Shown here in pieces: positions 10,849 through 57,689 of a stretch of 64,000 nt of DNA; positions within the stretch are counted from its first letter, which is position 1, and each line of letters begins with the position of its first letter. Both the position numbers and the translations under genes were made by a program. The notes beneath the pieces are model-generated. The model worked only from the letters and a program-made list of their open reading frames with translations, was not told the origin of the DNA and ran no database searches. The stretch comes from Utricularia gibba (Eukaryota; Plantae; Magnoliophyta): contig NEEC01000010.1 in the NCBI GenBank assembly GCA_002189035.1, positions 1,984,001-2,048,000 on the forward strand, given 5' to 3'.

Positions 10849-10886
10849 GGGGGGGGGGGGGGGGGGGGGGGGGGGTGGGGGTGGGG
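10849..10886. repeat. Poly-G tract (about 27 G followed by tgggggtgggg), G-quadruplex-capable
   Basis: Read directly at 10849-10886. Confidence 0.9.
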
Positions 10887-12484: not shown

Positions 12485-12651
12485 TGGGCCCTGCGATGGT
12501 ATGGGTATCAAATGTGAGGCCCAATAGATAAACAAAGCGGCTCGGCCCAATATTGAGTGAATATGGAGGGGTCCTGAATTTAAGGGTAAAATCGTCCTGC
12601 GTTTAAAAGATGAAATAGCGGAAGGGCGGTTTTCGATTCGGGGAAACCCTA
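12485..12651 (+). promoter_or_regulatory. Site II (TGGGCC/GGCCCA x3) plus telo-box promoter of SC35
   Basis: TGGGCC at 12485, GGCCCA at 12518 and 12544, AAACCCTA at 12644-12651, upstream of the ATG at 12704. Confidence 0.65.
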
Positions 12652-12703
12652 GAGTTGCGGACGGGCAGCTTCTCTCTGTCTGGAGGCGTCGCGCGGGGGC
12701 AGA

Positions 12704-14224: not shown

Positions 14225-14565
14225 AGTCAAGGGAGATGACAAATGGTAACAAGGAACCTGCATCTGGCAGCGATTATCTCTGTAGGCGTTTTCATCATCC
14301 ATGTTGTGGTTGACCTTTTCTACTTTTCTGGAATGTTCGGAGGTTTATGAAGTTGCTTTTCTGTGCGGATTTTCTTGCTTCTAGGTTCTCCTGTGTGCTT
14401 TACTGTCATATGTTGATGTTGAATACTTTCTTAGTTGTGTGTGCCTTGCAACCAATCATTATGCCATTTACTCATCATGACTCTTTACTGGCCTATAGTG
14501 TGTGGTACTTGAGGAGTAGTAGTTGCTGCTTGACAAGACGGAAGCAGTTACAGTTGCTGTTTTTA

Positions 14566-14601
14566 GATGATGCAGTAGCGGTTGATGATGCAGTAGCTGT
14601 T
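14566..14601. repeat. 18-bp tandem duplication
   Basis: gatgatgcagtagcggtt followed by gatgatgcagtagctgtt. Confidence 0.8.
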
Positions 14602-17445: not shown

Positions 17446-17629
17446 ACCGTCTCACTGAGATGATATTATATAAATACAGAAACGTTTGTACAAATGGGAA
17501 ACAGTGATACATGTTTGATGTTACAGCAATGGGAGGAAGAGAAGATCAAAGACTTTTTTGTTGGTTCTGATATCAAAACACAGAACCCAGATGCGATCAC
17601 AAAAAGACAACCAAAAGTGTCATCGGTGA

Positions 17630-18196
17630 TCAAAGGCCGTTGGAAGGATTGAAATTGAAATCGTTACTGTAATTGTAGCCCCCGGGGAAGAAGAGGTTCT
17701 GGGCACCGGCGTTTCCGAAGCTCAGCGCCGGAAGCTGTAAATTGGGGAGGGAAGCTTGGGGATCGGTTACGGATGCTTCGAACATCGTACGGTGTCCGAT
17801 GGCTGCACTTGGGACGACGGAGTCGATGAGGACTGGCGGCTGTGAGGATGGAAACGGACTGTTGTTGGGCCGCAAACCAGCGGCGGCGATTTGGTTCAGG
17901 CGATGGGAAAACGGCAAACCGGAAAATGGGGCGGCTGGAATCCCAGTAAACTCCTGCACTAACTGTCTGAAATTTCGAACGTCGGTGGTGAGCACCGTCG
18001 TGGGCGCCCGCCGTGAAGTGCGTGTCCGCTTCCTCGTAGACGACGGTCGTAGTGAGCTTTTCCCAACGCGGCGATGTTGAAGATTTGAAGACGGGGTGTG
18101 AGTGGAGAAGGAAGAAGCCCCATTAGAATAGCTCATCATCTCCTCTTCTTCTTCTCCGTTGGACGACTGCACGCTTGCAGTGAGTGCAGAATCCAT
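17630..18196 (-). CDS. VQ motif-containing protein, intronless
   Basis: RKRTRTSRRAPTTVLTTDVRNFRQLVQEFTG (FxxxVQxLTG-type motif). Confidence 0.9.
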   Translation of the reverse strand: MDSALTASVQSSNGEEEEEMMSYSNGASSFSTHTPSSNLQHRRVGKSSLRPSSTRKRTRTSRRAPTTVLTTDVRNFRQLVQEFTGIPAAPFSGLPFSHRLNQIAAAGLRPNNSPFPSSQPPVLIDSVVPSAAIGHRTMFEASVTDPQASLPNLQLPALSFGNAGAQNLFFPGGYNYSNDFNFNPSNGL

Positions 18197-19186
18197 GAAA
18201 GGAAGGATCTGGTTTCGTAGCTGAGAGAGAAGAATGTATAAATGTAGGAAACAATAAAACACGTGCAAGTAAACGGAATATGACAGATGAATGGAGATAG
18301 GGGCAGGGCGTGGCGGTGGTGGTAGGGCCGCCGCCGAGGAACCGGCCGGTAAGTGGTGCCGGGTCAAAGTGGAACTCCAGTGAATGCGGTGGAAAAAAGA
18401 GTCAATGCTTTATACTTTTTATAAACCCATTTCACTCCCTCGAAAGTTCGAAATTGCGTTCTAGAGAACTCAACTTTACAATTATTACATTTTGGTTAAT
18501 TGCGTATATGGTATTTCAAATTATGAGAAGTAGAAGAAGCATCACGTCCAAGGAATCCCAACCGTTCACACTGTTTTTCTACCAAGGAATATTCATGTCT
18601 ATTTTTTTATTTCACAAATTACAAACATGAATCTATGAAAAAATAATTTCCAACTATTATTTTCTTTGAATAGAAAAGTATTGTTATTAACCTCAAGTCC
18701 AACTATCAAAGAATAGTATTATTTATCAATAATAAATGCATCATATTATTTTTAAATAAAATATTTCATGGATGACACATGAACCAAGGTGAATTAGAAA
18801 TAATAATACGAGAGTACCTAAGAAAGTATTAGATAATATGAAAAAAAAATGGTATAAATTCATAGCTTTCGAAATATAAGTCATGGCTGTTACGAGGTTT
18901 TATGGGCCGTGGGCCTAAATCTGGCGTGCAGATGGGCTACCGGCCCATGATCCTACATATGGTAAGCAAATGGGCTCTTTGTGCCTCTGGGCTGTGGAGA
19001 TATTTTTTCAATAAATAAATTATTTTATTGAAAACCATTAACGTCGTATGTGAAAATGATTTATCTTTTTTTGTAAATAAATTTTCTTTATAGAATAGTA
19101 TACTGATATTTGCTTAACTAATTGACATGAAATTAATTATACAAATAAATGATCATTTCCAATAAATATTATTAAAAGATAATATT

Positions 19187-20100
19187 TTAGTCCGGCAAAA
19201 AAGTGAGCTTCTCAAGAACAGCAACTTGATGGTTCATCTGATCATCATCTCCTGCAGCTTGTGATTCTGTGTATGATTTCTGTGATTCCCCCATGGCATC
19301 TGGGGATGATCTTGGGAAGGTCTGCACATTCATCACCACAACTCTCTGCTTCCTTTGGTCGCCACCATCTTCTTCTTCACTTCTTCTTCTTGGCAGCTTT
19401 TCGCCGGAGCCGAACGGCAACGCATCAGAATGAGAGCGTTCTGCGGCGGAGAAACCGTCTTGGATTCCTCCTCCTCATCTTCATCATGATCGTCGATAGA
19501 TTTTTCTTGTGATTCGTCTTTGGTTTCGGTCAGAATCATGTACAAGTTGTAGAGTACGTCCCTTGATTGATGATGATGATCGCTCTCCGATGGGGGATTT
19601 CCAATCGACTGTAAGAAGGAAGAAAAGGACGTGAGATCGTGGCACATTGGTTTTCGTAAAATTACTACATACCGCGTCTTCAACGTCATCGTTATCGGAA
19701 ATGACGTCAGTCGCCGGAAAATTCCCGAAGCATCGGAGCTCGAGCAAGCCACTGGCGAACCTACGAGCCCCGCTCCATGACGATCTCTTTTTCCAGTTCT
19801 CTGACGACCCCTTCGGCGACGGGACTTTTACTTGTCCGGCACAGGTGACCGTCGGCGACGACGGCTCGGATGTATCCAAGCCATCGTCTTTAGCCAACAA
19901 ACAGGGGCTACCATGGCTAATACTGGAGCTCCTTAAGCCGTGAAGCTGGCGGGAGCGTCCCCGGCGGTGGCGCCCCCCGGCGCCGGCCTCACGGGGCTAC
20001 AAATAGGCTTGGGGATCAATCTCCATTGAGGCCTGGTCGGAAAACGCACCAAAGAATCCCGCGGCGGTGGCAGAGACCCCAGCCGATCTCGGCCTTCCAT
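19187..20100 (-). CDS. Conserved plant protein of unknown function (At1g78110-like); one 64-nt intron and two apparent -1 frameshifts
   Basis: Family motifs are spread over three frames: FPTRPQWRLIPKPICSP, EPSSPTVTCAGQVKV, LRCFGNF, PPQNALILMRCRSAPAKS. Adding one base at 19973-19978 (C6) and one at 19394 restores the frame. Confidence 0.75.
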
Positions 20101-21298
20101 CATGGAGAAGAAATCACACTGTCGGGGGCAACCCAGATGGAAAACTAGAAATGGCCAAGTCTCGCTTCAGTAGCCTCTCTTATTCCTGTCCTGATCCCAA
20201 TTTACATCAGTTTATAAAATTGTTATGGAACGACGTTGAACTCATTCCAGCCGCGAACTCGTAACATGGGTTAAAATAAACAAAATCCTGATTAAAATAT
20301 TAAATTGTTCGTACGAAAATTAGTTCATAGTGTTTTTTGTATCATTGGCATTGGTTTAGTTGGCAACTTTATGATGCTTTTGGCTGCTTGTAAGTTGATA
20401 GTGGAGTTACACACAAGATAGGGTATTAAAGAATGAATGAAAATTGGAAGAGATGAGTTGTTTGTGCTGATTAAATGGTACGTGGTTAGGTTGGGCAATT
20501 AAATTTGTTGGGTTGTAGCCACCTGGGCTGATTGGGGAAGCTACCAGCTGGCTGCCTTACTCAACTAGGCTGGGCTCTGTCTCTGTCTCCGTCTCCGAGC
20601 ACTGATACTGGATTATCCCATCGCCTGAACTCCACCGCTCTCCTCCTCACCCATCACCATGCTGAAAGCCTACTGTATCCACAAGTGTGGTCTAGTGCAT
20701 GTGATGCCATTGTAGCCATGGAAAGCCTACTCCTTTCTTCTCAGATTCATGACAACTGGGTTTCATCATGCTTTCTCAACTTTGTTCGCGTATTTAGACC
20801 ATGTTATTCCAAGAAAGTTGCATCTTGAGCTTAGTGCAGGCCAATGACAAAATGAATATAGGCAGAGCAAACAAACAAGGCAGATGGGCGAATGAAGGGT
20901 AACCTGTCTCTATCTCTCTCTGTTCTTTAGGCCAACCCTGTCCGGGTGCTTTTTAAACTATCCAAAATACACTACGCCCTTCGTACCATCCTACTATGCG
21001 CTCTGTACATGCACATGCACCATCCATCCACCTGGAAATAGACAAAAGATGGGGAATTTTATCACCCTTCTCGTTAGGAATTCACAACAAACAGAGAATG
21101 TTTTAAACACATGTATGCATCTTCACATCAGAACACCCTTTTATTTTCAAAAACAAGCATTTACACCGCCAAAATTTTGAAGTCCACGCCAAAAGCTCGG
21201 CAACAAAAAGGAAAAGGAAACAAAAGAGACATGGACAAGGCAGCTGTTAACTGAACTTTGGTAGTCCCAAGAAACGGAGGCCTCATGGATGCTGCAGT

Positions 21299-24200
21299 CT
21301 AAAATAAGCAATCCAAGTAGTGGTTGTATCGTTTACGTTTGAACTCCATCAAGCTGCCATACATTCTGTCAGAAACTCCCACGAACAGTGCTTCAGTATC
21401 GGGACTGAAAGAGAGTCCAGCAATCTCTCCAAAAAGATCGATTTCCTGTCCCTTGGCATATCCAGAGTGCGTGTCGAAAACGTGGACGAAGTCAGCTGGC
21501 TCAGCCATGGCCAGGAACTGACCATCTGACGAGAATCTAATTGTCCTGATTGCTCCCATCCTTCCCTTGAGTATCACTAATGACTGTGATAGGTTCCTTA
21601 TGTCCCACAATCTGCATGTTTTGTCCTGGTTGCCAGTTGCGAGGATATGTCCATCCGGGTGCCATGCTGATGCAAAGGAGTAATCTAGATGCCCACTCAG
21701 AGTACTAAGGACCTGGACATATGAAATTTTCATGTTCATGAAATGTAGGAAGGGCACCACCCAACAAAAAAAGGGTAATCCAGGACAGGATTCCATACCT
21801 TCCCTGATTGTGTATCAGCAAGCAAGCAATCCCGACTGTCACCAAGGATAGCAAGCATCTTGCCATTGGGGCTAACAGATGTGTTCTGCAACAATTTGGT
21901 GACCAGAAGTTAGGCAACCGGTTATTTTCTCGGGAACTGCTGGCGAGGTATTCATTCCCTTACATTCACAGACCAAGGGAATGTGAAACGATTCAGGCAA
22001 GTGAACTTTGCAGTATCCATGACCCTGACTTGAGCATCGTTGTTAGCAGACATGACTCTCATTCCACCGCTGCATATGAAAATTGAGAGCAACATGAGCG
22101 TATCTCGGAGGAGTTGGTGATGCGTACAGCAACATACTGGAATGCATATCAATGTTCGCTTTATACCTGGTATCATAATATATGTCCACCGCATTTGTGA
22201 TGGCATTTTCGTCATTAGACAATTTTGCACAGAAAGCAACTCCAGGTTGGTCGATATACTGCAATAGAAACCTGAACTTACTCAAAAGAGCAGTTGTAGA
22301 GGCAGCCAGGTCAGATACCAAAATCTTAGTTATGTTGGCACCTTACAGATAAACTCCCCTTGAAAGCCTCCAGCCACAAGAAGATTGTCTTTGACCGCCA
22401 TAGTACTTATCTGAACCCTTGACAGAGGTTGGGCTAAACATCCAGGGTACCTCTGGATGAACGACTCAATATCAAACACGGGAAAGGCTTTTACTCAAAC
22501 TGATGGGAACCAAGTCGACGTTCCAGGTTGTGTTCAACTCACCAGGGAGGGAGATATAGACTTGGCAACATTGAGAACTTCCGTACCCTTCTTTTGTAGG
22601 GAGGACCAGTGCATCACAGAATAGTTTTGCATCAGGTACACGTCATGTTTTGAGGTAGACCACACCAGATTTCTCAGCTGAAAAGGTAAAATCCAGTTAA
22701 AACAAATTCCACGAAGAAATGAAGTTTTCCAGGTTTTAGAGAAGAAAGGAGCACACACACACATGACCCAGCCTCAGTATACTAGTGCTAAACTACGGTT
22801 AAAAAAGGGAAAATAAAACATGAATGGATGTAAACCAGAAACAAAATGGCAAGTTTGAGCGAAATCAGTAGCAGATTAGATCAAATTTCAAGCCAATCAA
22901 ACGCATCACAGAACAAAACTGAAGGCGTCAACAGATACAGATTGGGTGATATTGCATTTGTGGTCCAACTCAGTCCTTGAAAGGCTAGTGACTAAAACAG
23001 AAGGGTAAGCAATCACATAGAACAGTGCACACAAGCATGTAAATCTAGTTATCAACTACCACAATAACTGGCTGCATAACTTAGTCCTGATCTAACCATA
23101 CTCAAAAGATCTGTATCTGCCAGCCGCTCAGACAAAAACTGCACTCCAGCTAATGTGTCTGAAATAACAAGTCAAACATAAATTTGGGGGTGGGGGTGGA
23201 GGGTCTGAAGTCCTTCAAATTTGTGTATATTACCTGCAACCTAATCAGAACTAGGCCTAACATAGTGAATAAAAAACTAAATAATGAATTCTAAATAGCC
23301 AAGTGCTAAGCTAAAAAAATTGTCCAGGAATGCCAAGTTATTGGCTCACCGGAATCTGTTCCTTGACACAAAGCTAGGAAAACCAAGGGGTGATAGCAAG
23401 GTAAAAATTTCAAGATTGCACCTCCCAAAAAGGTAAGGTGAATAATTTATCAAGCGACTCTTCGCATTTTTTAATCTGCACAAAAAGGATTAGGTAAATT
23501 ACAGGCCCAGTCCATGTCACTTGAACTGGGGAAAAGCGTCTGAAACTAAGCTATTCTCATTATCAATCATCGCGGAAGAAACTCACCCAACATCACTTGG
23601 ACGGAGAAATAATCTAAAGAACCTTACCACATATCCAGAAAAACAAGCAACGATTCAAACAAGGTGGAAAAACATCAGAAAAAAAAGTAGGAAAATGTTC
23701 AACGCTGATATAATGAGAACTTGATGCAGCTTAAAAACTTTAAACCTTCTAACAAGCGCAACTGGTGCTTCCGTGAAATGAAATAGATGCATGGAAAGTG
23801 GCTAAAAGATTGTGTAGCAACTTGCAAAAATGGAAAATAAAACTTTTGGGCAAAAGGTGAGGACGAATGAGAAGTTGCACGGTAGAGTTGGGTGTTGTAT
23901 GATCAACAGTGTGTACCACACAACCATCAGATGCATTTTCTGCAATAGAAGGCCATAGAATTTCTGTTAATCTTTACCTGAAAATGCACTATGGTAGATT
24001 TGACCACTCTAGTGTTGAATTGAAAATCGTAAAACTGATGTCCCTTCTCCACTTGGTGGCATGTCTGCGCAAAAAATAGAACAGACACATTACTTCAAAA
24101 TTACACTTAGAAGCGAGCACCCATATTCGCACAGAAATCAGATTGCAGCACGAATCAACAAATATCCGCGGGAAATCATCACCTTATCAAGATCCTCAGG

Positions 24201-24553
24201 AGAGTTAGAGAGATTTTCGTAATTCTTGTACTGCTTCAAACGGGAATCACGATACTTTTCTCTGGTAAAACTTAGTCGCTCCCAAGGAATACCCTGTATG
24301 TCTTTCCCATTCCTGGCTTCGTAAGCTGAAGTATCGGTTCTGGAATTGCTCTGTAATTGAATTCAAGATTATGCGGAATAAACCAAAAAACCAAATTAGA
24401 AAAACTTACGATATCGAAATCATCTTCAAAGTCAGACTCAGCAGACTCGTCATCGACGGAAGCGCTTCCACTTATCAGTGCAACGTCATCGTGACCAAAA
24501 TCAGAGAAGTCATCATCGAAATACTCCAACTCGTGGTTCTGAAACTGCTCCAT
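21299..24553 (-). CDS. WD40-repeat protein (DUF2415/At1g78070-like), multi-exon
   Basis: MEQFQNHELEYFDDD; KTYRVFLGS-region exon; QLRNLVWSTSKHDVYLMQNYSVMHWS; GHLDYSFASAWHPDGHILATGNQDKTCRLWDIRN; QEIDLFGEIAGLSFSPDTEALFVG. Confidence 0.9.
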
Positions 24554-25659
24554 GACTCTGCAACTACACAATAAAGGAAACATCAAATAAAATAGTCAAA
24601 CTACAACAAATCGTGCAAAACACATTTGATTCAGAGCGATCTACACACTACAGTAAAAACTCACATAAGATCCTACAGAATATTCAATCGAATAAAGCAA
24701 GTACCACTTCTTCGCTTACAAACCTCAACACAGAGTATGGAAATGCAAAAACGATAAAAAGTGGCCGAATCAATTCCGACGACGTTACAAAAGCAACAAT
24801 AATAGCAGCAAAAAAAACAACGACCAAAGATTCCAACAGCATAACGCACGCCGCACGGCATCGGAATGAATATCCAAAGAAAACAACAGGTAAAACACAC
24901 AAAACAACCGAGTCAATGGAAAAAAACTAACGAACTCTACCTGAAGTTTCAAACAGGGCACAGACCAGTGAATTAACGATGTTTTGCGGAAATCAGGGGC
25001 TGAGAGATGATCGAAGATGAAGAGATGAAAAAACAGACAAAGGATGTCAAAGTCTCGAGAAGACTCCAGAAGGAGGAAGAAAACTGACACTCCTGAGCGC
25101 CGTCCCCAACCGGTGAGCAATCCTCTGCCGCCTTTCTCTATACTTATAGTGTCAGAAAGGTTGAAGAGACTGCCGTGCCCCACACTTGACGGAAGGAGCA
25201 CGCCGTTACATTAAATGTTTGTTTTTTTTATATTTGGTGTTTTTTTTTGCCTTGTATAATTGAAACAAAGTACGGAGTTTACTTTCATTAAACCCATTTG
25301 AATTCTTGAATATCTACCTAAATCGCATAAATTTGGAAAGAAAAACAAATCATAAGTTGACTCACGCTCTACTCTCAAACCATTGACTCTTTTTAAAAAG
25401 AAAAAAAATTAGTTGGTAACGGCTTTTAAATTTGTGTCAATTATGTCTAAAATTCTCGTGCATCACTTAAATACTAATTAATGTTTGTTCTTTGAGTAAA
25501 TGAAGCATTAAGGGAAGGATGGGCATGGGCTTTGGCGGTTGTGAGAGAATTAAAATAAGTTTATTTTAATAAGATTTAAATTAATCTATTGTGTTAGTAA
25601 GGCACAGTGCAGCGAGTTAAATTAGAAACAGCAGTCAAAACAAGGAAGAGCGAGGGAGT

Positions 25660-26017
25660 GTGGGCCCACTTTCCCAAAACCGAAGGCGGGACCCACAAAA
25701 TATGTAGAGTAGCCTTGGCGCCACAAGGTGCGATTCGGTAGGCTTTCACGAGACGGAACACGAGGTCGCAGATGGCTTACGTGGCGGGGAGGGGGCCCAC
25801 CTGGTGGACGCCGTCAACAGACTGGCGGCCGTTCATTTAACCGTGGTTGGGTTTTTGGAAATCAGGGTGGTTGGGTTAATGTGGGGCCCAGTTGTCGTTG
25901 TCGGTCACGTGTGGGGCCTTCCTTCTTTCTTTTTTTCAAGGGGTTGGTAGCTATTTTTTAATCGACGATGGAGGTGGAAGACTGAGATCGACGGTGGATC
26001 CTATTTGGGGTGGGCCC
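25660..26017. promoter_or_regulatory. Cluster of six class-I TCP-type sites (GGNCCCAC/GTGGGNCC) plus a G-box
   Basis: Sites at 25660, 25689, 25793, 25881, 25911 and 26010; CACGTG at about 25906. Confidence 0.6.
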
Positions 26018-26542
26018 CGTCTGCTTTTGGGAAATTCTCAATTTTTATTTTTGAAACGCATTAATTTAATTCCCGTTTTGCGCACAACTTTCCTTTATTT
26101 GTTTTATGTGCACCCGAAACAAAACAAATACAAACACATCCTCTAAAAAAAATAATTTTTCAGTACTACATTTCGCTCTTATTCGTTTTCACCCCCTTTC
26201 GTTCATTCTCGTAAATCAAGGTTCTCTGCTCTTGTTTCATGGCGATTCTACCACCTTCCCTAATTTTAATTACAAAAAAGTTCAAATTAAAATGATCCTC
26301 CTGGTCTAAAGAATGATAAAATCTTCCCAAAGAGAAAACCCCTGGCTCACTGCTGTTTTCCTGCGCTGATGCCGATCTGCTTTCTGCAACGCCTTATTCT
26401 CCTCCTCGGAGACGACGGCGGCGCTGCTGCATCATAACGGGCGTTGGGTATGTATGTTTCCGTTGGACAAAGCTACCATCATCATCATGCCTGCAAAAGC
26501 ACATTCAGATTGCACAATCAAAACCCTAGGTTGGATACCCAA

Positions 26543-27160
26543 AAAATATCTGGATGCCGTCGCGTAGTGTCAGCACTTTTCAGATATTTTGTGAAAACTA
26601 TCTTCGGCGTGAAGGACCCGGTTACCGATGGTGGATGACTCGTCGGAATGATTGATCCAACGTTTTTCCACATTCCGACGGCCGTGAAAGCGCTGCTTGG
26701 TTTGCAAGCCATTGGTGGTTTTACACCACGTGGGCCTGCCTTCCCACTACCATAAACACACACATCATCACATAAATTTAATTCATTTTTTAGTTTATCT
26801 TTAAATAATAAAATCAATTTAATTAAAATTCATTATCATTTAACACATATTTACAGGTGGCGCATGGATGGCAGCCTTCCATTAAAATAATAATCAGTGA
26901 TCATGGATCAGAATTCATTAATTCAGGAGTGGTTAAAATATCTAAAATAAAAGAAAATCGATGGGCGTGGTGGTGGGGGGGCACGGGAGAACTTATTCAT
27001 GATAACCATCACGTTTCCCTTTTCAGAAATGACAAAACACTTGAAGATAACTTTAAGATTCTTATCACCATGGTGACGCCACCCATGATAACCTTTTAAA
27101 TTTATTTAATTTCATAGGATAATGGCATCTCCACTGTCGACGTGGAGTACAAGATATTTT
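26543..27160. promoter_or_regulatory. Cluster of four evening elements with a G-box and a CRT/DRE core
   Basis: AAAATATCT at 26543 and 26935; AGATATTTT at 26582 and 27152; CACGTG at about 26728; CCGAC at about 26675. Confidence 0.6.
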
Positions 27161-45165: not shown

Positions 45166-47517
45166 TCAACCCACGGACCTCACTGGGGTTCCGCCGAACA
45201 TCCATATTGCAGCACAGAAGACTCCTAGGAGAGACACTAGGAGCAAAAGACAACTAGTTCTACCTTTGCCTGTACTTGGCAACACATTATTACCTGATAC
45301 AACATTCATATATCTGGTGTTCAATCTCAACCCACTAAAACTGGACATTCGCTCTAGTGCCCGATTCACAAATGCGCGTTCGGAGGCCGAAGCAGGAGTG
45401 GTAGGTATAGACTCCATATATGACCAGAGAGCAGAAGAGAACCACGAGTCGTTACCGTCATCTTCTTGATTGATTCCATTTTCACCGGCTCCGGCGGTGG
45501 CGCGGAGGTTTACATGATCAAAGCTTTGATTATCATGGGGGAAACCTACGGAGGGGAAAACTCAAACAACATTAGCAGCTAAACTAGGATGGCAAGCCAT
45601 TACAGCACGAGCTCCTTAGGCTCAAACTCCCCCATTTCTACTAGGGCTCAAGAGTTTTCGCCACCTTGAAGATGACATGGTGGCCTTGCCATACCATCCC
45701 ATCTGATCAAGATCTCATTGTGTCAGTCAACAAAATGAAGAAGCAGCTGCAGTGCAGTGAATGAAGGTATTCCTTTCATATCTAAAAACACAAAATGGTA
45801 TCGCAGTTGGAGTACCTGGATTCGACAAAAGGGCGATTTCCTGGTCAGATTCCGCAGCGTGGATGCTGCAACTCAGCCCATCCGTGTAGCTAAATTCAGT
45901 CACATTTGTAGGATGTTGCTGCATTTGATGAGCTGCGCTTGACACTGTGCTCATCGTCCCGATATCGTAGCCAAAGGAACTAGAATAACCTTGGGCCATC
46001 TGCCCTGATTCACTGATTCCTCCATCACAAAGGATCGACGACGCATCTTGGAAATCATACTCATTTAAGCCATCTAGTTCATCCAGCAGCAGCTCCCCGT
46101 AGGGTTGAACGGGGTATTGGGTAGCTGGACAGGGGCATAGCAGATCATCCATCTCTAGGAAATCTTTATCTCCAAAGATTTCCTCCTCAGTGAGACCGGT
46201 ATCTAAAACACTAAGAGCAGGAGTGGAAGAGAATTCAGGCGTTTCGGGTAAATGCAACAGAGTCATGTCTGTCTGGTTGAAGTTACTGGCTGGCTCATCA
46301 ATTCTCTGAATAAAAGTGTGGGGAACCGGTGGTAGCACGTCCCTAGCAGCATGTTCAACCAAGTTAGTCTCGGTTCCCTGCTCAGCAACAAGCTGGCCAT
46401 ATGTGATGGGTTCATCTTCGATCTGATTCATGAATTCCCTGAGATCATCTAGAGAGGACAAATATTGACCATTTTTGGGCATGATTTCCTTGATAGGCAT
46501 GGTGTCATCAGCACTCTTCGTTACAGGATTCTCCCCAACAATGAAAGGGTGAACCTCTAGATCTTCTTTATCCCAATCTTCTTCCCGGAAAGGAGCACCA
46601 TATTGTTCACCATTTTTGGGACCGGGGCCACTTTTCTTGAACACCTTGTACAATGCATAGTATTCCTTGGCCGTTGCACATCTTTTGAGCTCCTCTTCAT
46701 CCAAGGTGTACTCATGCATAACCCAGTCAGTGCGGTCTCCTCTTGGCGCACGGCCTCTGTAGAATACCAGCGTCTTCTTTATCCCAGCAGCACGAGAACC
46801 ACATGAGATGATTCTGTCTTTCCCCGTAGCTTTCCAGTATCCATGACCTGTTGCCCGATTCGACCTTGCTCCATTTGGGTACTTCCTATCTCTAGGACTG
46901 AAAAAGAACCACTGTCTGTCCCCAGTTCGAAGCTTTGACATCGCTGCAAGAAATAAGATGAAAGCATGGTAAGCAACATACCCAATCGGTGCAGTTCAAC
47001 CAAATCAAACAAGACGAAACCACCAAATAATTTTGTAAGACAGCCAGATCCTTCACAGATTAACAAAGTCTTGAAGCAACAAGTACAAAGCGAACGGGGT
47101 TGGGCGTCTTCTAATCATGTCTTATTATTGATGGCGAACCTCAAACCAAAAGAACAAGCGTAGATCAAATTTTCCAACTTCGGAACACAGAACTAGGAAT
47201 TTCCAAGTGTCCGATCAGGTGACCAGAGAAAGATAACCAAACACATACAGAACAACACTTAAAACATAAAAAAATCCATGAAAAACAGGGATCAGAAGGC
47301 ACAAGTCAACGCGAACAGAATCGAAAGAAAACCCACCAGGCAATTCTTCAGGATCACACTTATACACATCAGTCTCGCCGATCACATCCGTAAGGTGGCG
47401 TTTACGGCAGATCTTCCTCTTCAGGTAGTACCCCACGAGTTCCTCATCCGTAGGATGGAATCTGAACCCTGGAGGGAAAACTCTTTCATTATCCATGGAA
47501 TCGGAATCCAATCCCAT
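45166..47517 (-). CDS. NAC017: Membrane-tethered NAC transcription factor (ANAC016/ANAC017 type), 3 coding exons
   Basis: [15 protein letters not shown]; [21 protein letters not shown]; [10 protein letters not shown]; DWVMHEY; [14 protein letters not shown]. The last exon (about 45547-45166) gives [22 protein letters not shown]...[11 protein letters not shown] and a TM helix [19 protein letters not shown]. Confidence 0.9.
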
Positions 47518-47829: not shown

Positions 47830-49860
47830 TAATTCCATTTAACCATAGTTTTGACTTAAATTCTCTTCGCAACTGTTGAATCAAAATTAAATCGCTGTGC
47901 AAATATTACAAAAAATAAAAACAATTATATTAAATTAAAAAATATTTTTTTTATAAAAAATCATTAAATTAAACCTAAAAAATCATAGCTTATCGCTTTT
48001 TATCTCAAAATGAAGGAGTATACTGGTGATATATTATTTATATCTATATTAATTTTAAATATATTATGTAATATAATAAATAAATTAATAATTATTTCAT
48101 TCAATTATAAACATAAACTTTAAAATATTTTGACATTTATTAAGATGACATTAATAAATTGGAATTACTAATGTTTGACAATTGCATCGCAAACAACATA
48201 TTTTTTCTTAAAAATTAAATTTGCCCCATTTTAATATAATATATAAACCATTTTTTTTTGAATTTATTTGGAGTGAGACGCCGCCTCCTTTGACTGATCA
48301 ACAACGCCCATGCTGCACCACTAGAAGGAGGGTCCACCCGTCCGGTGGTTTTTCTCTAAATAAAACTAATTCATAGAAATGTGGCCTAAATTTGGAAACT
48401 GTGTGAAAATAATTAGATTTGCAAAATAACGTAATTCAATTTACAAAAACAAATCAAATTACGTATCATCATACGAAAACCGGGTCTATTAGAAAAATGA
48501 CCATCCAACATCAATTGTATCTTAGTCATCCTCAATTAAAAAATTTTACTTAAATATGTGAGAGAGAAGAGAAAAATGACTATATTTGTCAATAATACTA
48601 CGAAAACCATGTTTAAAAATTTGTATCTAAATGAAAGTATCAAAAATCACCTAAGCACATATTTCATCTGCGTATGATTTCATACCCTAAATTCTGAATC
48701 CAAATCCTAAAATTCAAACCATAATAGTAAGTGATTTCTATCTTAATTCAATAATATAAATTTACATCTTCAAAGATGCATTATGAAATTTGTATCACAA
48801 TACAAGGATAAATTTAAATAACATGTTATTCAATCATAATTTATAACTTCTATACTATGTAATTTTTTCAAGAATTCTCAATTTTATAATTTATTTATTA
48901 TATGGGCATGACAGAATTTCATCGAGTGCGGTTTAAGGTTTTATATCCTAAACTTTTAAATCACAAATAATAAAAGTTTATATGTCACTCAATGATATTA
49001 AAGAAATATGGTTAAGTTTGTTCATTGGATGCATGATGTAAAGTATCTGTTATACATAAGATAATTTTATATTTTTTTATAATTATATTTATTTCATAAT
49101 ATTCAAATAAATGAAAAAATTGCAAAAATAACGTTTCACATTTTGATCAATATAAAATTTTCAAGTTTTAAAATTGAAAAAAAGCATCTTAAATTATCAA
49201 AACAGTACAATGAAAATCAAATATTTTTTAAAATTTTTTAAAAATAAATCGATTCATTATGTTGTGAATCAACTTTGGTTTCAAACTTAACAAAATTTTT
49301 CGTATTAACATTTCAAGTTCGACGAATCGAATGACATCCCTTTTAGGGTTACATTGCTTTTGAATATTGTGATACATTATTATAATAGTATTAGGATTAA
49401 GACCGGTTAATTTTGATAATATGAGGAATTAAATATACAATTTCATAAATTTGGAAGTAAATTGTTTACAAAAAAACAATTTAAAAGATTTATGATATAA
49501 TTTTAAAATTTGAGAATCAAACTTTTTATATTGACTATAATTTGAAGAGGCATCAATAAACTCCATCCTCAAATAAACTTGAGAATTAAACTCATTTTAG
49601 AGTTAATCCACGGGATAAGGTGTCCATATATCTTACAAATATCATTTAAAAACTTAGTTACTTTGTAAATATCAAACCAAACCTAGTTATTTTCCTTAGG
49701 CATTTACCCAATTCACTTCCCTCGTTGCCTTTCCAGTAACATAATTACATTACCCACTTAGAAAAACTCAAACCTTAATGTTATCCTGTCAAATGCCTCG
49801 TGTACAGTGGTTGAGGGATTCAAAGCCGGACCCATTAACAATTAAATCAAAACACGCACT
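47830..49860. other. Highly AT-rich ORF-free intergenic block, possibly a degenerate transposon remnant
   Basis: No ORF >=60 aa in the track; strongly AT-biased; small GC island at 48270-48350. Confidence 0.45.
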
Positions 49861-50047
49861 TCACGCGTTTTGGGGGGTTGGGTGATGGTATGTTCGAGCC
49901 CATGTCGGACAGGGGAATGTGCGAGGGGGAGGACGGGGTACGGAGGTTTCTCCTGTTTCAACATTGCAGACTCGTTGAACGCCGGTAGCTGTTCTTCATT
50001 CAGACCTTTCGATCAAGACGATCGAATTCATCAACTGTCCCGTTGAT

Positions 50048-51703
50048 ATGCTGAGGAGTATCCAGAAGTTGATCGCGCTATCACCTTCCCCTGTGGAAGT
50101 GATCTTGAAATGGGAAAAGCCGGGCTCTTCTCCTCTCCTTCTTTTCGATGCCGGCCAGAAAGTAGTTTCCCAGTACTTGCAAGCTTTCGATGTCCTCCGC
50201 CAATCTCCCACCGACCACGATAAACTTATCTCCGATGCCCTGAAGAGGCTCAGCCGGGAGTTCGATGCTGTTTTGAAAAGATTGACTCAGCTCCAGGCTG
50301 GTGCTGCTTCAACTCTCCCTACTTCCACTACGGAGTCAAGTTCGGTGACCGATAGCACAGGAATCCCGTCCAGGTTTGAGGATTATGCTAAAGCTATTTT
50401 AGAGATACAGGGCGATGTTTTGATTGATTATTTACGCAGCGTAGCACTAAGAATGAGCTCCATGGATAAGATTGTGAAATATTATACAGAAAATAGAAGA
50501 TCTTTCCTAAAGAAGCATCTCAAAAGATTTGGTTTCGAAGAAATTCTAGTGTATGAGGGTGTTTCTTGGGATGCACTGCAGCCAAAAATGGGGATATGGG
50601 GTGACCTTTCCAGGATACTTGTTTGCTTGATTCAATATGAGAAGCAGCTATGCGAGAAAATCTTCGGAGATCATGCTGTGAGGGATAAATGTTTTATACA
50701 AACTGTTGGAAATATTGCTGTTAAACTCATTCGTTTTGCAAGAGGAATGGGCTTTCAGAAGAAGCAGCCTTATCATGGAATGGAGAGAGTTTTGGACTTG
50801 TACAGTTGTTTCATCTGGTTTAAGGCAGAGGCTGATGCCCTTTTCGTCTCAAAAACTGGAGAAACGATCAGAAAGTTATGCCAAGAAACCTTATTCAATA
50901 TTAAGAAGGAGATGGAAACCATGCTTCGTGATCTCAGAAAGGATGTTGCAGATGAACATTACGAAGTTCCTGATAATAGTTGTGAGGCTCTGCTACTAAC
51001 ACGCGAAGTGATGCACCAAGTAAGTCTCATAGCTAGAAATGGTAACCAGCTTGCAAGCTTAACCATAAAGGCTCCTCCTTCGAATGTGGATGGCTTGATT
51101 ATCCACCACGATGATATGCATGACAGAAACCCCCTGGATATGCACTTTATCTTCATCGTTGCAGTTCTGCATCTCAAGCTGAGCAGGAAATCTAAAAGTT
51201 ACAATAATCAGTCATCAAGGCTGTTATTCATGATGAATAACACACATTTTATGATCAGATCCATCGAAGGATCAAATAAGTTGCAAGAGAGTATTGGCTC
51301 TGAAACTCTCCGCAGGTTGAAAGAGGATTTGGATCTCAAGGCATCAAGTTACTTAGCATCTACTTGCAAGGAGCTGGTGAATTGTTTTGATGAGAAAGGG
51401 CTCCGTCGTCGAGAATGGTTCAAATCCTGGTACCATAAAGCCGCAGCCAAGAGGATTCAGGCTTTCAATTCTGCTTTGGAGACAATGCAGAGTAGTCTTC
51501 ATCCCCTTGGGATGATTAAGGATTCGGAACTCAGGACCAGAGTTTGTGACGTCTTGCATGCTACTGTGTCTCCAGCCTACATAAAATTTCTGGACAAGCT
51601 TGAGAAAAACCAGGAACTGGGGCTCGTTCTGCAACAGAATGCAAAATATCCTCCAGAAAACCTTCGCCATGTCTTATATGAGAAATCGTCTGTTCATGCT
51701 TGA
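50048..51703 (+). CDS. EXO70: Exocyst subunit Exo70, intronless, strongly diverged (closest remembered motifs are EXO70D-like)
   Basis: 551-aa ORF; VILKW..LLF, YEKQLCEKIF, LLLTREVMHQVSLI, PLDMHFIFIVAVLHLKLSRKSKSY, LFMMNNTHFM, IQAFNSALE, ELRTRV. Confidence 0.85.
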   Translation: MLRSIQKLIALSPSPVEVILKWEKPGSSPLLLFDAGQKVVSQYLQAFDVLRQSPTDHDKLISDALKRLSREFDAVLKRLTQLQAGAASTLPTSTTESSSVTDSTGIPSRFEDYAKAILEIQGDVLIDYLRSVALRMSSMDKIVKYYTENRRSFLKKHLKRFGFEEILVYEGVSWDALQPKMGIWGDLSRILVCLIQYEKQLCEKIFGDHAVRDKCFIQTVGNIAVKLIRFARGMGFQKKQPYHGMERVLDLYSCFIWFKAEADALFVSKTGETIRKLCQETLFNIKKEMETMLRDLRKDVADEHYEVPDNSCEALLLTREVMHQVSLIARNGNQLASLTIKAPPSNVDGLIIHHDDMHDRNPLDMHFIFIVAVLHLKLSRKSKSYNNQSSRLLFMMNNTHFMIRSIEGSNKLQESIGSETLRRLKEDLDLKASSYLASTCKELVNCFDEKGLRRREWFKSWYHKAAAKRIQAFNSALETMQSSLHPLGMIKDSELRTRVCDVLHATVSPAYIKFLDKLEKNQELGLVLQQNAKYPPENLRHVLYEKSSVHA

Positions 51704-52213
51704 ATTTATTGTTCCATACACATGTATATTTTTTCAATCTGCTAGTTACAGAAGCTGAATGAAATGTGAGGGAACACACTGTAATCTCATCAGTCATCAC
51801 CATGTATTCTTAATTGGACATTCATTAGATAAAGGCATTTACTTTACATGTCTTTCTAAATGTTCAAGCTATACCAGCAACTGTACAAGATGAACTATCA
51901 AGGAATGATCAATGGTAATTGATCTGTTTGCCTGGTTTTTCTTGTACTGTTCTCCCTTGAACCTTCTGCTCCTGTCAATACAAAAAATGCATTCCTACAG
52001 GTCCATGATTGGTTTTCTGTGGGGTCATCCGTTGACTACTTCATTGAGGTATGAAACTTCCTTGGGGTTTCCTCTTCCTACAGAGTAAAGAGCTCCTCCG
52101 CAAATGATTTGCATTTGATGTTTTTTTTTCTTTCTTTCAGATATTTGTCGCAATTTTTTTAGCGATCCATCATCTTCGCCAGATCCATCCAAAAACTGAG
52201 ATTTCAGTCATCC

Positions 52214-55032
52214 ATGTCTGACGCAGTGTTGTCGGGGCTCCTGAGTCAGTTAGCCACGATCTTGCAGCAGCAGATCGAGGGAGAGGTGAGATTAGTATCC
52301 GGGGCTGAAAGGGAATTGAAAAAACTGGAGAAAGAGCTGAAATCAATCAAGGCTGTGATTGCTGATGCTGAGAAGAAGCAGATTAAGCAAGAGCAAATCA
52401 AAATTTGGCTTGAAAGCCTTAAAGATGTTGCCTTTGACGCCGAGGATGTTTTGTGCGAGTGGATAACGGCTACGAGGAAAGCAGAAATGTATCACGAGAA
52501 TCACAAGGTATTGGCTTCTCTAATGTTTTTATCTGTTGGTTTTGACAGAATTGTCCTGCGTCGTGGTGTTGCCCTAAAGATAAAGGAAATCAATGAAAGA
52601 CTGGTTGAAATTTCGGAGCAGAAAGATCGATATGGGCTGAACGCTTTTGCTGAAACCACATCATTTGAGAGGCCAAAAGCAGTATCGTATGTGGATGAGT
52701 CGCAGGTGATAGGTAGAGCTTCAGACAGTTCTAGAATTGTAAGCATGTTGTTGTCTGATGGTAATCAAGAACAGGTACTAAATGTGTTCTCTATCATCGG
52801 CATGGGGGCATTGGCAAAACAACCATAGCACAAATGGTGTACAAGGCCGAAGATGTTATGGATCATTTCGACAAGAGAGTATGGGTGTGTGTGTCTGATC
52901 CTTTTGATGAAGCCCGAATAGCAAAAGCCATTGTAGAAGACCTTGATGATGATGTTCCTTGCTCAGATGAGCTTGAAACCGCGACAAGAAAAATCAGGTC
53001 TCGTCTGGGAGGGAAAAGGCTCTTGTTTGTCCTCGATGATGTTTGGACCGAGGACTTCCTGAGATGGGAGCAGCTTTTCCACTCTTTCGCTGTTTGTGCA
53101 GCTGGGAGTGTTGTTCTAGTGACTACACAAAAGGAAACTGTGGCAAGAGCAATGGGAAGCAGAGACGAGATCCACTTGAACCTATTATCAGATGCTGAAT
53201 CTTGGTCCTTGTTCCAAAAGTTCGCATTTGCAGGGAGGTCTAAACAAGAATGCCTTGTCCTAGAGAGTGTGGGAAGGAAGATAGCAGAAAAATGCAAGGG
53301 ATTGCCCTTCTCTCTCAAAACTATAGGAAATCTGGTGAGGTTCAAGAAGACCCAGAATGACTGGCTTGATATTTTGAATAGTGAATTTTGGGAGCTTCCT
53401 GAAGGTGTAAGACTATTCCCCCCTCTAACGTTGAGCTTCTATGAGCTGCCTTCTCCTATGAGACAATGCTTCTCATTCTGTGCATTCTTTCCCAAAGATC
53501 ATGTAATCGAAGCTGATAACCTCATCAAGCTTTGGATGGCACAGGGCTATCTGATCCCTTCTGGGAATGTGGAGATGGAGACATTAGGCCAGGAAATTTT
53601 GGAAAATCTGGCTATGAGCTCTTTCTTTCAGGACATCAAGAAGGACAAAGATAATGAAAGAATTCTAAGCTTCAAGATGCATGATATGGTGCATGATTTT
53701 GCATTGTATCTAAACAGGAATGACTTCTCTTCTGTCAAGATAACAAATGGTTCAGCACAAAAGTTAGAGCCTTCCCATGAAGGGGCTCGTCATTTGATCT
53801 TGATACGAGAAAAAGACACCCGTTTCCCGGACATTCATCATAATGCAAAGAAGCTGGCTTCGCTTTGGGTTCAAGCTTTTTATGATTCACCTCGTATAAT
53901 AAAAGGTCAGCCAGAGAGCATTGATTCAGCCTGGTTTCTAGGCTTGAACCGCCTCAAGGCACTAGACTTGAGCAGAAACATGATAGGCGAGCTTCCAAAA
54001 GAAATCGGAAACCTGATGATGTTGAGGTATCTGAACTTATCACACAATCCATTTGTCGAGTTGCCTCAGACATTGTCTGAGTTATTCAATTTGCAGACAT
54101 TGAAGCTTAATTACTGTTGTCATCTGGTAAGTTTGCCACTGAAAATAAGAAAGTTGATCAACCTCAGGCATCTTGAGATCAACAACACTGAAAAGCTCAA
54201 GTCATTGCCCAAAGGTATTGGGCATTTGGTTTGTCTTCAGACTCTGAGCAAGTTCACCATTGTCCATGGGAACAGCAGCGTTCACGCACCTGTGAGTGAT
54301 ATGGAAGATTTGAAGAACCTCAACAACCTCAGAGGTTTTCTGAAGCTCGAAGGACTTGGATACATATCAGGTGCCACTGAAGCCATGGAAGCTGAGTTGA
54401 AAAAGAAGATTCATCTATCTGAGCTACAAATGGAGTTCAATGATTGCACAGGTAATGGTAGAGAGGATGAGGTGATCAAAGCTCTAGAGGTTCATGAGAA
54501 CTTACAGTCACTGCAAGTAAACTTATATGGGGGGACTCAGTTTCCTTTCTGGTTCACTAAACTGAAGAACTTGAGAAAGTTATGTCTGCAGGACTGCAAA
54601 AACTGCTCAGATTTGCCTCCTCTGGGAAGCTTGCCAGCCCTTACTATTCTCCGACTGGAAAGACTCAATGCATTAAAGTGTCTTGGAATGGAAGGATCAG
54701 CTTCAATGCCGTCGGATGAACAAGCATTGTTTCCAAAACTCGAAAAGCTCAAGATTTTGAAATTGGAGAACTGGGAAGAATGGCATGTCAATGATACATC
54801 CACAGGTGGATCAAAGCTCCATGATGGAAGCTTGTTGATGTTTCCTTGTCTCAGGTATCTGAAAATTTCACACTGCATCAAGCTGAAGGCGCTGCCACCA
54901 CCTCTTCTCCAGGGAAGTCCAATGGTGAAACTGCGGATCCGAGGTTGCCCATTTTTAAAGAAACAGTACAACAAAGAAACTGGAGAGCACTGGAGCCAAG
55001 TCTCACACATACCCAAAATCAGAATTTCATAG
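52214..55032 (+). CDS. CC-NB-ARC-LRR disease resistance protein (RGA3-like), about 939 aa once a -1 frameshift in the P-loop is corrected
   Basis: Rx-type CC (AFDAEDVLCEW); P-loop GMG/GIGKTTIAQ split at the G5 run 52804-52808; kinase-2 LFVLDDVW; GLPFS; CFSFCAFFP; MHDMVHD; LRRs (LRYLNLSHN, LQTLKLNYC, LRHLEINN). Confidence 0.9.
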
Positions 55033-55174: not shown

Positions 55175-55979
55175 GCAGAGTTTTCAATCAAGCTACTCTC
55201 GGTTCCCTGCAGGAAGATTATCATGTTCATGAAGACCGAGATTATCCAGTGAAAGGCAAGTATTGATCATTTAAACTTTAAAACCATGACTCCACTGAAA
55301 GCAGCATGTTGTTGGGACTCTTCAGTGCAGGATTCTCCTCAGAATGGAAGATTGAACCTGAAGATCTTCCTTATCCCAATCCTCTTCCCGGATTACAGCT
55401 CCCATTTTCAGGGCCAGGGCCACTTTTCTTGAAGACCTTGCACAATGCGTAGTATTCTCCAGTATCCATTACTTGTTGCTCGATTTGGCCTTTCTCCATT
55501 GGCGAACTTCCTATTTCGAGGACAGAATAAGAACTACTGCCGGTCTCTGGTTCTAAGCTTTTGACATCGCTGCAAGGCAGTAGCATGGTAATCAAAAGAA
55601 AGGAATCACAAGCTACACACCAAAGCAAAGGGCGCGGGCGCCGACGCTTACAAAAGATTTGATGTCAAGTAACAACATCCTATATTAGAATCAAATCCCA
55701 CACAACAAAAGACAGCAATCAACGAATGCAGCCAGACGTCTAACACAAGACAGAAAGATCTTACGAACAAAGGAAATGTGGATAAAATAGACAAGCAGCC
55801 GTTTACAGAAGAGCGAATGGCAAGGCACCCCACAAAGCAAATTTCCAGGATCACATTTCTACGCATCAAACTTACCGATCACATCAGGATGGTGGCGCTT
55901 ATAGCAGATCCTACTCTTCAGATAGTACACGACAAGTTCTTCATCCGTGGGGTGGAATAAACCGGAGACCCATTCCCAT
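55175..55979 (-). pseudogene. Decayed, truncated duplicate of the NAC017-like gene
   Basis: [14 protein letters not shown] with an in-frame TAG at 55859-55861; +1 indel in exon 2; about 167-nt internal deletion (equivalent to 46666-46832); similarity continues to cagggaaccgag and then stops, with no TM exon. Confidence 0.9.
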
Positions 55980-56318
55980 CCCAGCAACATAACAGGCGCA
56001 TTGAGAGTCTTCCGCTTCGGGTGGATCCGGCGATCGCGAAGACGACGAAGGGAAGAGAGTGCAGAAATTTGCAATGAGCCACTCACGAGCTGCCACATCA
56101 TATATATTGTTTTATTATTTTTTTTCCCAAACTGGTCTGAGAGGACAGCGGTGCGGGTCTGATCCATGAGCCAAATGCGGAGGTTGCGGGCGAGTTCCTT
56201 CGAAAAGCATCTAGAAGCCCCTCGAAGTTCTTGAAGAGCACCGATTCCATAAGCTTTAAAATCCCATTCCCGTCTGAAATTTGCAATCTTTCTGCTGCTC
56301 TGATCGCCAACTGCGAAC

Positions 56319-57689
56319 ATGAGGTACTACACTACTGCTCTTAACCGCCGCTTTTGTGAACCTCTTGGAGTTTCTGTACCTAACGATTGGGTTCATGGTT
56401 TAGTTCCCGGAAGCGTGATCACTCGTTTCCTGTTTTCTTCTTCTTCTTTGAGGTAGTTTGTGTGTGTTTTTTTTTTCTGTTTTGTTGTCCAAATTTTTTC
56501 CAACTGAAGAAACAAGGCTAGTTAGTAAGCTTCTCCGATGAATCAGGACTTTCGAGTTGATGAACTATTTTGATTAGGGCTTATGCTTCGGCGTGATAGC
56601 TGCTGGCTTCTACTGACAGGGAATATTTGTTTCACTTGCCGCCTCCGGCCTTAGGATTTGTTTTCTCCTGTCCAGTGTGCTTCAGATTCTAAAATTCGTA
56701 GTAGGAGAGTCCGGTGTATTTGCCTAAAATAATTGAGTCCTGTTTGCGCCGGTTGATCGGTGCGTTACGATTTTTCAAGACTTTTAACTTCAATTCTTCT
56801 GTGTGAAGCCGACACCCGCTTGTAAAATGGGCACAGAGGTCCGACAAAGTGTTCATCACTGTGGAGTTACCTGATGCAAAAAATGTGAAGCTCAATCTTG
56901 ATCCCGAGGGAAAGTTCCAGTTTTCAGCTAATGCTCCTGATGGGACACCGTATGAGATCGGCATGAACCTTTACGACAAAATCGATATCAATGTAAGTGC
57001 CTCCGATTTTCCTCTTTATTCAGGAAAGTAAGAGACGTCTTAGATAAATGTTCCATGCATTTTGCTGTGGTGTATGCATGTGGGTGGTAGTTCGTTCAAG
57101 CAAATCCCTTCGATGGGTTTATCCTTTTTTTTACGCTCTTGAACCTGCGTGATTTTTTAACTTTTGTATTGGTAATCTGAACTCAGGAGAGCAAATCGAA
57201 CTCTACTTCTCGACATATTTGCTACCTTGTGAAGAAAGCAGAGAGTAAATGGTGGAGTAGGCTAGTAAAGGAGGGGGGGAAACCACCCGTATTCCTGAAA
57301 GTCGACTGGGAAAAGTGGGTGGATGAAGATGAACAAGATGAAAAAGGTTAGTATTTCAGATCGCAGTTCCTCTCTTCCTTGAGACTCCCATCTGATGCAG
57401 AACTCTTGTGTCTCTCAGCCGGCTCCGATTTTGGGGACTTCGATTTCTCTGTAAGTAATTGCTACACACACATATTCCTGTTTGTGGGCATTGCGCTGAT
57501 ACCGTCACATTTGACCTTTGTGTTCAGAATCTTAACATGGGTGGCGAAGCAGAAGATGAAAGCGGTGACAATGAGGAAGAAGAGGAAGGCCCAACAGCCA
57601 CCAGTGGCTCAACAAGTGAAATTGCTGAAACCATGGCACGAGGGAAAATGCATCAGCAGTATTTCCTCTCTTCTCGAGGCGTGTTTTGA
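56319..57689 (+). CDS. P23: HSP90 co-chaperone p23 (CS domain), 5 exons; the first coding exon is only ATGAG
   Basis: MS|[24 protein letters not shown]; [29 protein letters not shown]; DFGDFDFS; acidic tail. Confidence 0.9.

Follow-up and report, generated by a model that had tools for sequence, protein, structure and literature searches.

Probable ancient pairing of an Exo70 gene with a CC-NLR gene in Utricularia gibba and other asterids

Exo70 proteins are repeatedly the targets of effectors, and in grasses and Arabidopsis a few of them have been connected with immune receptors. The known cases comprise unlinked guards (Pii/OsExo70F3 and TN2/EXO70B1), Exo70s that are integrated as domains into a receptor (RGH2-Exo70F1 and two FX fusions) and the combination Pur1/Exo70FX12. 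Here we describe an Exo70 gene (50048–51703, + strand) of Utricularia gibba which is followed on the same strand by a gene for a coiled-coil nucleotide-binding leucine-rich repeat protein (CC-NLR or CNL, 52214–55032). Both genes lie in a window of 64,000 nucleotides (assembly GCA_002189035.1, contig NEEC01000010.1, positions 1,984,001 to 2,048,000 of the forward strand), to which all coordinates refer unless a fetched locus of another species is named. A sequence-only reading of this window had proposed the two genes as a candidate decoy-guard pair. They probably represent an old immune gene pair which is not described in the literature searched. No description of a conserved linked Exo70-CNL pair in dicots was found in the full-text literature, a provisional result since most subscription journals are outside that search.

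The closest described system is the barley locus Rps8, where the LRR receptor kinase Pur1 and Exo70FX12 are linked and both required, and whose authors discussed a decoy or helper role of Exo70FX-type proteins (PMC9258809; bioRxiv 10.1101/2024.12.13.628418). Like Rps8, the U. gibba locus combines a lineage-specific, fast-evolving and shortened Exo70 paralogue with a linked immune receptor gene. However, the partner at Rps8 is a cell-surface receptor kinase and not an NLR, the Exo70 belongs to the Poales-specific FX clade, which is mostly devoid of CorEx, and the locus is a presence/absence polymorphism, whereas the pair described here is kept across orders. In the rice Pii system, consisting of the NLRs Pii-1 and Pii-2, OsExo70F2 and OsExo70F3 are the target of the effector AVR-Pii and the NLR reports the attack (PMC9618136). 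Provided that the CNL of U. gibba acts as a guard, the resemblance would lie in an Exo70 that is an effector target watched by an NLR; moreover, OsExo70F2 (7pp2) is the best sequence match to the U. gibba Exo70 among solved structures. In contrast, Pii is a grass system, and its Exo70 is a canonical member of the F clade which is not linked to the NLRs. In Arabidopsis, TN2 is reported to guard EXO70B1 (Zhao et al. 2015, as cited in other papers). On the same premise this case would share with ours that an NLR-type protein keeps watch on an Exo70 of a dicot. TN2 is a truncated TIR-NB protein, the two genes are not adjacent and EXO70B1 is a canonical exocyst subunit, all of which differs from the locus described here.

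In barley RGH2-Exo70F1 and other NLR-Exo70 fusions an Exo70 is physically coupled to a CC-NLR. In U. gibba, however, there are two separate genes, divided by a stop codon and 510 bp of spacer, and the Exo70 is located upstream instead of forming a C-terminal domain. A further protein with an integrated Exo70 came up as a remote HMMER match (P0196, 1571 aa, with Rx_N, NB-ARC, LRR and a C-terminal Exo70_C domain). Conserved receptor systems are represented by ZAR1, an atypically conserved CNL working with ZRK/RLCK adaptors, and by the NRC0 cluster, which is kept across asterids (bioRxiv 10.1101/2020.10.12.333484; PMC11371149). The CNL of U. gibba resembles ZAR1 in being conserved and in having a tree that tracks the species tree, and ZAR1 is the closest solved relative of its NB-LRR part (E 1.7e-60). 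With NRC0 it shares the persistence of an NLR-containing gene cluster across asterids. Nevertheless, the CNL is RGA3-like with an R13L1/DRL21 C-terminal LRR and is neither a ZAR1 nor an NRC orthologue, and its linked partner is an Exo70 rather than a kinase or a second NLR.

An Exo70 followed by a CNL on one strand was observed at 7 of 7 orthologous asterid loci that were fetched, i.e. in the window and in six other species, which together represent Cornales, Escalloniales, Gentianales and Lamiales. Gaps are given from the stop of the CNL-adjacent Exo70 to the CNL start. In Salvia divinorum an Exo70 precedes a CNL of 937 aa with a gap of 1.1 kb. The locus of Paulownia fortunei (CM033112.1) contains an unannotated intact Exo70 open reading frame (ORF) of 569 aa and, 689 bp further, a full CNL ORF. 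Two tandem Exo70s are followed by a broken CNL in Olea europaea var. sylvestris (gap approximately 0.6 kb) and by a 964-aa CNL in Cornus florida (2.0 kb). The gene order in Escallonia rubra is Lipase_3, Exo70-kinase, CNL and Exo70 (gap 3.3 kb), and that in Cinchona is Lipase_3, Exo70, Exo70, CNL and DUF1677 (gap 1.8 kb). Both genes are orthologous across species, and their order and orientation are kept from Cornales to Lamiales.

The comparison of microsynteny suggested by the sequence-only reading spoke for the proposed pairing: in six further asterids, drawn from four orders, the gene immediately before the orthologous CNL is an Exo70 of the same diverged clade, read in the same direction. 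Because the arrangement recurs in these species, the linkage is ancient and not a chance adjacency. The split between Cornales and Lamiales dates back more than 100 million years. Upstream is a short, fast-evolving and intronless Exo70 paralogue, with one to several tandem copies at this position in other species; the gene that follows it in the same orientation is a conserved CC-NLR of low copy number whose N-terminus is MADA-like. That these two separate genes are the window copy of an ancient asterid pair and would act jointly in immunity is, in our judgement, an evenly balanced proposition.

Since the Exo70 is unannotated in Paulownia and wrongly merged in Cornus and Nyssa, surveys based on annotation would miss the pair. 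In Paulownia the Exo70 ORF occupies positions 6996–8705 of the fetched locus, and the CNL (9392–12256) is annotated with 752 aa, the ORF being open over 955 codons. In Cornus florida two tandem single-exon Exo70s (fetched locus 9866–16116) were merged into one model of 1129 aa. The corresponding model of Nyssa sinensis (fetched locus 10001–27066) merges two tandem single-exon Exo70s into 1182 aa and spans 17 kb.

Alternatively, the two genes could have been neighbours since the asterid ancestor in a slowly rearranging block and be functionally unrelated, with the Exo70 as an ordinary trafficking paralogue. Of the competing explanations we hold this one to be the most probable, though less likely than not. 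The genes flanking the pair served as a control. Lipase_3 was found upstream just in Cinchona and Escallonia and DUF1677 downstream just in Cinchona, Paulownia and Salvia, and both are absent from the whole 64-kb window. Where they occur, these flanks document a wider microsynteny, i.e. a generally syntenic region in which the adjacency could be passive. However, the pair is present at all seven loci and each flank at only two or three of them; the linkage outlasts the flanking synteny. Other sequence has taken the place of both flanks in the window, and the pair still stands 510 bp apart. Exo70 and CNL are the only genes common to the window and the other loci, a single further match being due to generic kinase-domain similarity. 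Furthermore, the orientation is identical at every locus. Passive conservation is also at odds with the general behaviour of NLR loci, whose synteny is among the poorest in plant genomes.

A last point against mere neighbourhood is the fusion gene which is found at the same position in Escallonia rubra (JAVXUO010001744.1, fetched locus 4046–6694). Within its ORF, which runs without interruption over 882 aa, Exo70_N and Exo70_C are joined to a complete protein kinase; the ORF is located 3.3 kb 5' of the CNL orthologue, where the bait gene would be expected. This Exo70-kinase architecture fits an immune role.

Several observations have to be set against a joint action of the two genes. The sample comprises only seven loci, of which four were reached via the Exo70. 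The remaining three (Paulownia, Escallonia and Cinchona) were reached from the CNL side and, consequently, were not picked for the presence of an Exo70. Members of the Exo70 clade also occur away from CNLs. Nyssa carries two Exo70 copies and no CNL within 10 kb, Escallonia has extra tandem Exo70 copies at a distance of 25–45 kb from the CNL, and further clade copies are found on other chromosomes in Cinchona and Cornus. In Olea the middle of the CNL (fetched locus 12285–14674, approximately residues 103–296 of the NB-LRR piece) is inverted and parts are missing. Since both Exo70s beside this broken CNL are intact, an Exo70 would be valuable also without a CNL. Finally, the Exo70 is under purifying selection; an omega (ratio of nonsynonymous to synonymous substitution rates, dN/dS) of approximately 0.3 indicates constraint and not the diversifying selection that baits often show. 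Clade members away from NLRs, Exo70s that outlive their CNL and purifying selection on the Exo70 are at the same time points in favour of passive synteny. Outside the asterid loci, the nearest CNL homologues of Vitis (a tandem NLR array) and Theobroma, which are perhaps not true orthologues, have no Exo70 within 10 kb. A CNL orthologue from Solanaceae was not found among the best 120 CNL matches, and looking up the CNL of Daucus yielded no record.

The Exo70 gene (50048–51703, + strand) encodes a protein of 551 aa in a single exon and ends with a stop codon at 51701–51703. Its Exo70_C domain (PF03081) was recognized in Pfam with E 1.2e-44 over residues 192–543, covering profile positions 12–370 of 372. 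The Exo70_N (CorEx) domain, the N-terminal coiled coil by which a canonical exocyst EXO70 pairs with Exo84, was seen in 13 of 23 clade members and gave a weak match in the U. gibba protein (E 0.11, residues 40–77). The ORF, the Pfam result, the alignment with Paulownia, structure prediction and the trees agree on this gene. An intronless Exo70 at this position had already been recognized from the sequence, but the missing intron is no peculiarity, as genes of the EXO70.2 subfamily normally lack introns (preprint 10.64898/2026.01.28.702365). The diverged motif pointed out in that reading departs from the clade consensus as claimed. The U. gibba protein shares 41% identity with its Paulownia orthologue and is colinear with it in one frame. 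A search for compensating frameshifts against this orthologue found none, the other frames being without matches. Because the alignment yields matches in one frame only, the gene contains no hidden frameshifts.

A structure was predicted with AlphaFold2 from an alignment of 23 clade members. The model is an all-helical rod with a pLDDT of 80.9 and a pTM of 0.72. In Foldseek its best matches were AtEXO70A1 (4rl5, E 9e-13, TM 0.74 by target) and OsExo70F2 (7pp2, E 2e-12). The predicted fold thus matches the elongated helical rod of solved Exo70 structures. Compared with AtEXO70A1 and OsExo70F2, the protein has a shorter N-terminal part. Directly 5' of the Exo70 start the DNA is strongly AT-rich (48001–50000, 27% GC).

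A word-index protein search retrieved one match to the Exo70 (Salvia divinorum), no matter whether the query was one sequence or a profile of 23 members, whereas an exhaustive HMMER search yielded 391 Exo70 relatives. In the tree the U. gibba protein belongs to a clade of short Exo70s (approximately 500–620 aa; 54 representatives, support 99) which is separate from the representatives with F1- and E2-like names and includes sequences of legumes, cucurbits and Zostera. An Atlas search for Exo70 names returned the generic term “Exo70 family” and no lettered clade from among A–I, J/BX, FX and E1. A single orthogroup (support 100) unites the CNL-linked Exo70s of the lamiids, i.e. Olea A and B, the window, Paulownia, Salvia and Cinchona A. 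Cinchona B and the Exo70s of Escallonia, Cornus and Nyssa were placed in neighbouring subclades, a pattern that points to an old tandem array whose members were differentially retained. According to a kiwifruit preprint, EXO70E1a and EXO70E1b are tightly linked and fast-evolving; they may belong to the same clade as the U. gibba Exo70, which we take as a lead only.

The best matches to the CNL were all from Lamiales (Paulownia, Sesamum, Rehmannia, Phlomoides, Perilla and others) with 52–58% identity. In the CNL tree the U. gibba sequence falls inside the core Lamiales, after Gesneriaceae, on a long branch of 0.59 compared to approximately 0.12 for Paulownia from the same node. The genome is a compact and rapidly evolving one. 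The CNL orthogroup is low-copy with about one gene per species, and its tree tracks the species tree. Such a one-copy, species-tree-like pattern is unusual for an NLR.

Synonymous sites were mostly saturated and the codon usage of Salvia is shifted, which limited usable dN/dS values to a few pairs. For the Exo70 the usable pairs gave an omega of about 0.2–0.4, with 0.32 for the window and Paulownia, 0.38 for Olea A and Olea B and 0.19 for Salvia and a Lamiaceae transcript contig. The CNL pairs gave about 0.17–0.25, with 0.17 for the window and Paulownia. Where synonymous sites are unsaturated, both genes are therefore under purifying selection, and the values of the window are the same as those of the other pairs. 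Of the positions invariant in the other species, 33% in the Exo70 and 16% in the CNL are altered in U. gibba, which is approximately 1.5–1.8 times the value of Salvia in both genes. Since the excess is of this size in both, the heavy substitution of the Exo70 is largely lineage-wide. The divergence emphasized by the sequence-only reading is consequently real, but it does not reflect a decay specific to the Exo70; it largely results from a lineage-wide rate acting on an intrinsically fast clade.

The CNL had been described as a single ORF from 52214 to 55032. This is incorrect, as the reading frame breaks at the P-loop, which had been overlooked. As assembled, the gene consists of two ORFs (52214–52828 and 52834–55032), the second frame being open from 52765. 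The first piece (52214–52828, + strand) encodes a MADA-like N-terminus, an Rx_N coiled coil (Pfam, E 3e-22), a linker and the first half of the P-loop. The second piece (52765–55032, + strand) encodes in another frame the rest of the P-loop (GIGKTT), NB-ARC (E 1.2e-39), a winged helix (WH_DRP) and LRR families including an R13L1/DRL21 C-terminal LRR. The two pieces were used separately in searches and trees. Rx_N, NB-ARC and LRR are thus all present, spread over two frames, and are colinear with orthologues of 930–960 aa. A DNA alignment with Paulownia, Salvia, Cornus and Escallonia showed a single gap column at ATGGG-GGC (52802–52809) within the codons for GMGGIGKT; the site (52802–52812, + strand) contains a run of five Gs at 52804–52808. 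Instead of an intact P-loop of the form GxGGxGKT, the coiled-coil frame reads GMGALAKQP before it stops at 52826–52828, which would leave a CC-only product of 204 aa, and the other frame reads GIGKTTIAQ. No further stop or shift was detected in the 732 downstream codons, and no second lesion in 936 codons.

The N-terminus of the CNL, MSDAVLSGLLSQLATILQQQIE, resembles by eye the MADA motif (MADAxVSFxVxKLxxLLxxEx), and this region is conserved across approximately 20 orthologues. Over its full length the second piece shares 58% identity with the CNL of Paulownia. The kinase-2 motif LDDVW and the MHD motif are intact. The GLPL motif reads GLPF, and RNBS-B reads TTQ (codon CAA, 53128–53130, + strand), in contrast to the nearly invariant TTR of the orthologues. 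Even with an artefactual gap in the P-loop, these two changes could impair the binding of nucleotides.

The missing base is most likely, though far from certainly, an assembly error. It fits an artefact because it concerns one base at a run of five Gs, is the sole frame defect and is not accompanied by a raised dN/dS of the CNL. If the gap is an assembly error, the CNL of U. gibba is probably intact. A histogram of homopolymer lengths in the window revealed no obvious deficit of long G or C runs and speaks neither for nor against an artefact. A rescue of the frame by splicing was considered as well and rejected: removal of 54 nt between GT 52775 and AG 52828 would take out the P-loop and leave the frame unrestored.

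In case the frameshift is real, the CNL would be a young pseudogene or would yield the 204-aa CC-only product, and the Exo70 would be left without a partner. We consider this unlikely, but not negligibly so. Besides the break in the P-loop as assembled, such a decay would be in line with TTQ for TTR and GLPF for GLPL, with the loss of the CNL and persistence of the Exo70s seen in Olea, and with differences at 15.9% of the CNL positions invariant in five orthologues, compared to 3–11% in the others. The change of R to Q at a nearly invariant residue, in particular, fits a real decay of the nucleotide-binding site and adds to the points against a functional pair in U. gibba. On the other hand, the 732 codons after the gap have remained free of a second stop or shift, the omega of 0.17 to Paulownia is as low as in intact pairs, and the Exo70 is accelerated to the same degree, which points to a lineage-wide acceleration.

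The spacer between the two genes (51704–52213, + strand, 37% GC) has to contain the 3' end of the Exo70 gene as well as the promoter and the 5' untranslated region (5'UTR) of the CNL. The spacing of 510 bp on the same strand and the CNL start codon at 52214 were exactly as given by the sequence-only reading. In the relatives the corresponding spacer measures approximately 0.6–3.3 kb. The putative 5'UTR intron (52049–52140, + strand, 92 nt) noticed before has GT at 52049–52050 and a polypyrimidine tract with AG at 52139–52140, and it is a candidate from its sequence alone.

A fusion transcript had also been considered, in which the hexamer GTAAGT at 51020–51025 (+ strand) would be spliced to 52162 or 52207, giving a chimera of Exo70 residues 1–324 with the CNL, i.e. 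an N-terminal integrated Exo70 fragment; we regard it as highly improbable. The sites do exist. GTAAGT follows codon 324 in phase 0, the AGs at 52162 and 52207 are present with stop-free sequence in frame to the CNL ATG, and the genes are just 510 bp apart. The significance attributed to the donor did not hold, however, as the hexamer is about as frequent as expected by chance (20 copies in the 64-kb window, + strand, versus approximately 15.6 expected, with one inside the Exo70 ORF) and, in the alignment, is not conserved in the Exo70 of Paulownia. Moreover, Exo70 and CNL are separate gene models in all relatives. A transcript-sized contig of 2041 nt from a Lamiaceae sequencing run contains the Exo70 alone and extends 231 nt past its stop, and the CNL proteins of relatives assembled from sequencing runs have 928–956 aa, most of them starting with their own MSDA... 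N-terminus. The N-terminal helix of a MADA-type CNL must be free to act. Because of this requirement, an N-terminal Exo70 addition would probably disable the CNL. An NLR with integrated domain (NLR-ID) would have Exo70 and NLR in one ORF or transcript. Here the stop codon, the spacer and the separate genes of the relatives were found instead. Consequently, Exo70 and CNL are two separate genes and no gene fusion.

In the surroundings of the pair, NAC (NAM) domain exons are located on either side on the opposite strand (45730–46941 and 55862–56320, both −). A NAM gene is also present 5' of the pair in Salvia, with LSM and LAZY_C genes intervening. Elsewhere in the window, a run of 27 Gs (10849–10875) is G-rich on both sides.

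With regard to the preferred reading of an ancient pair acting jointly, the most likely mechanism would be that the Exo70 paralogue serves as a bait, either guardee or decoy, for effectors attacking exocyst Exo70s. The CNL would monitor this paralogue and, on activation, bring about cell death by means of its own N-terminal helix. As a second option, the Exo70 may be a cofactor, as in barley Pur1/Exo70FX12. By analogy to ZAR1 with its kinase adaptors and to TN2 with EXO70B1, a guard/decoy mechanism is plausible as an inference. The position of ZAR1 as nearest solved relative of the NB-LRR part and the Exo70-kinase fusion of Escallonia are in keeping with a joint action of the two genes. Tentatively, and with a probability that we put somewhat short of even, the pair may form an asterid-wide sensor-executor module of more than 100 million years of age, in which the Exo70 bait is guarded by the adjacent MADA-type CNL. 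Such a module would be a conserved system of guard and adaptor like ZAR1, with Exo70 in place of kinases. Tandem Exo70 baits and the Exo70-kinase fusion of Escallonia would represent its lineage variants.

If this is true, the pair, which extends from dogwood to mints, olive and the quinine tree, would constitute a further ancient conserved receptor system besides ZAR1 and NRC0. It would also account for one of the fast-evolving expansions of the EXO70 family.

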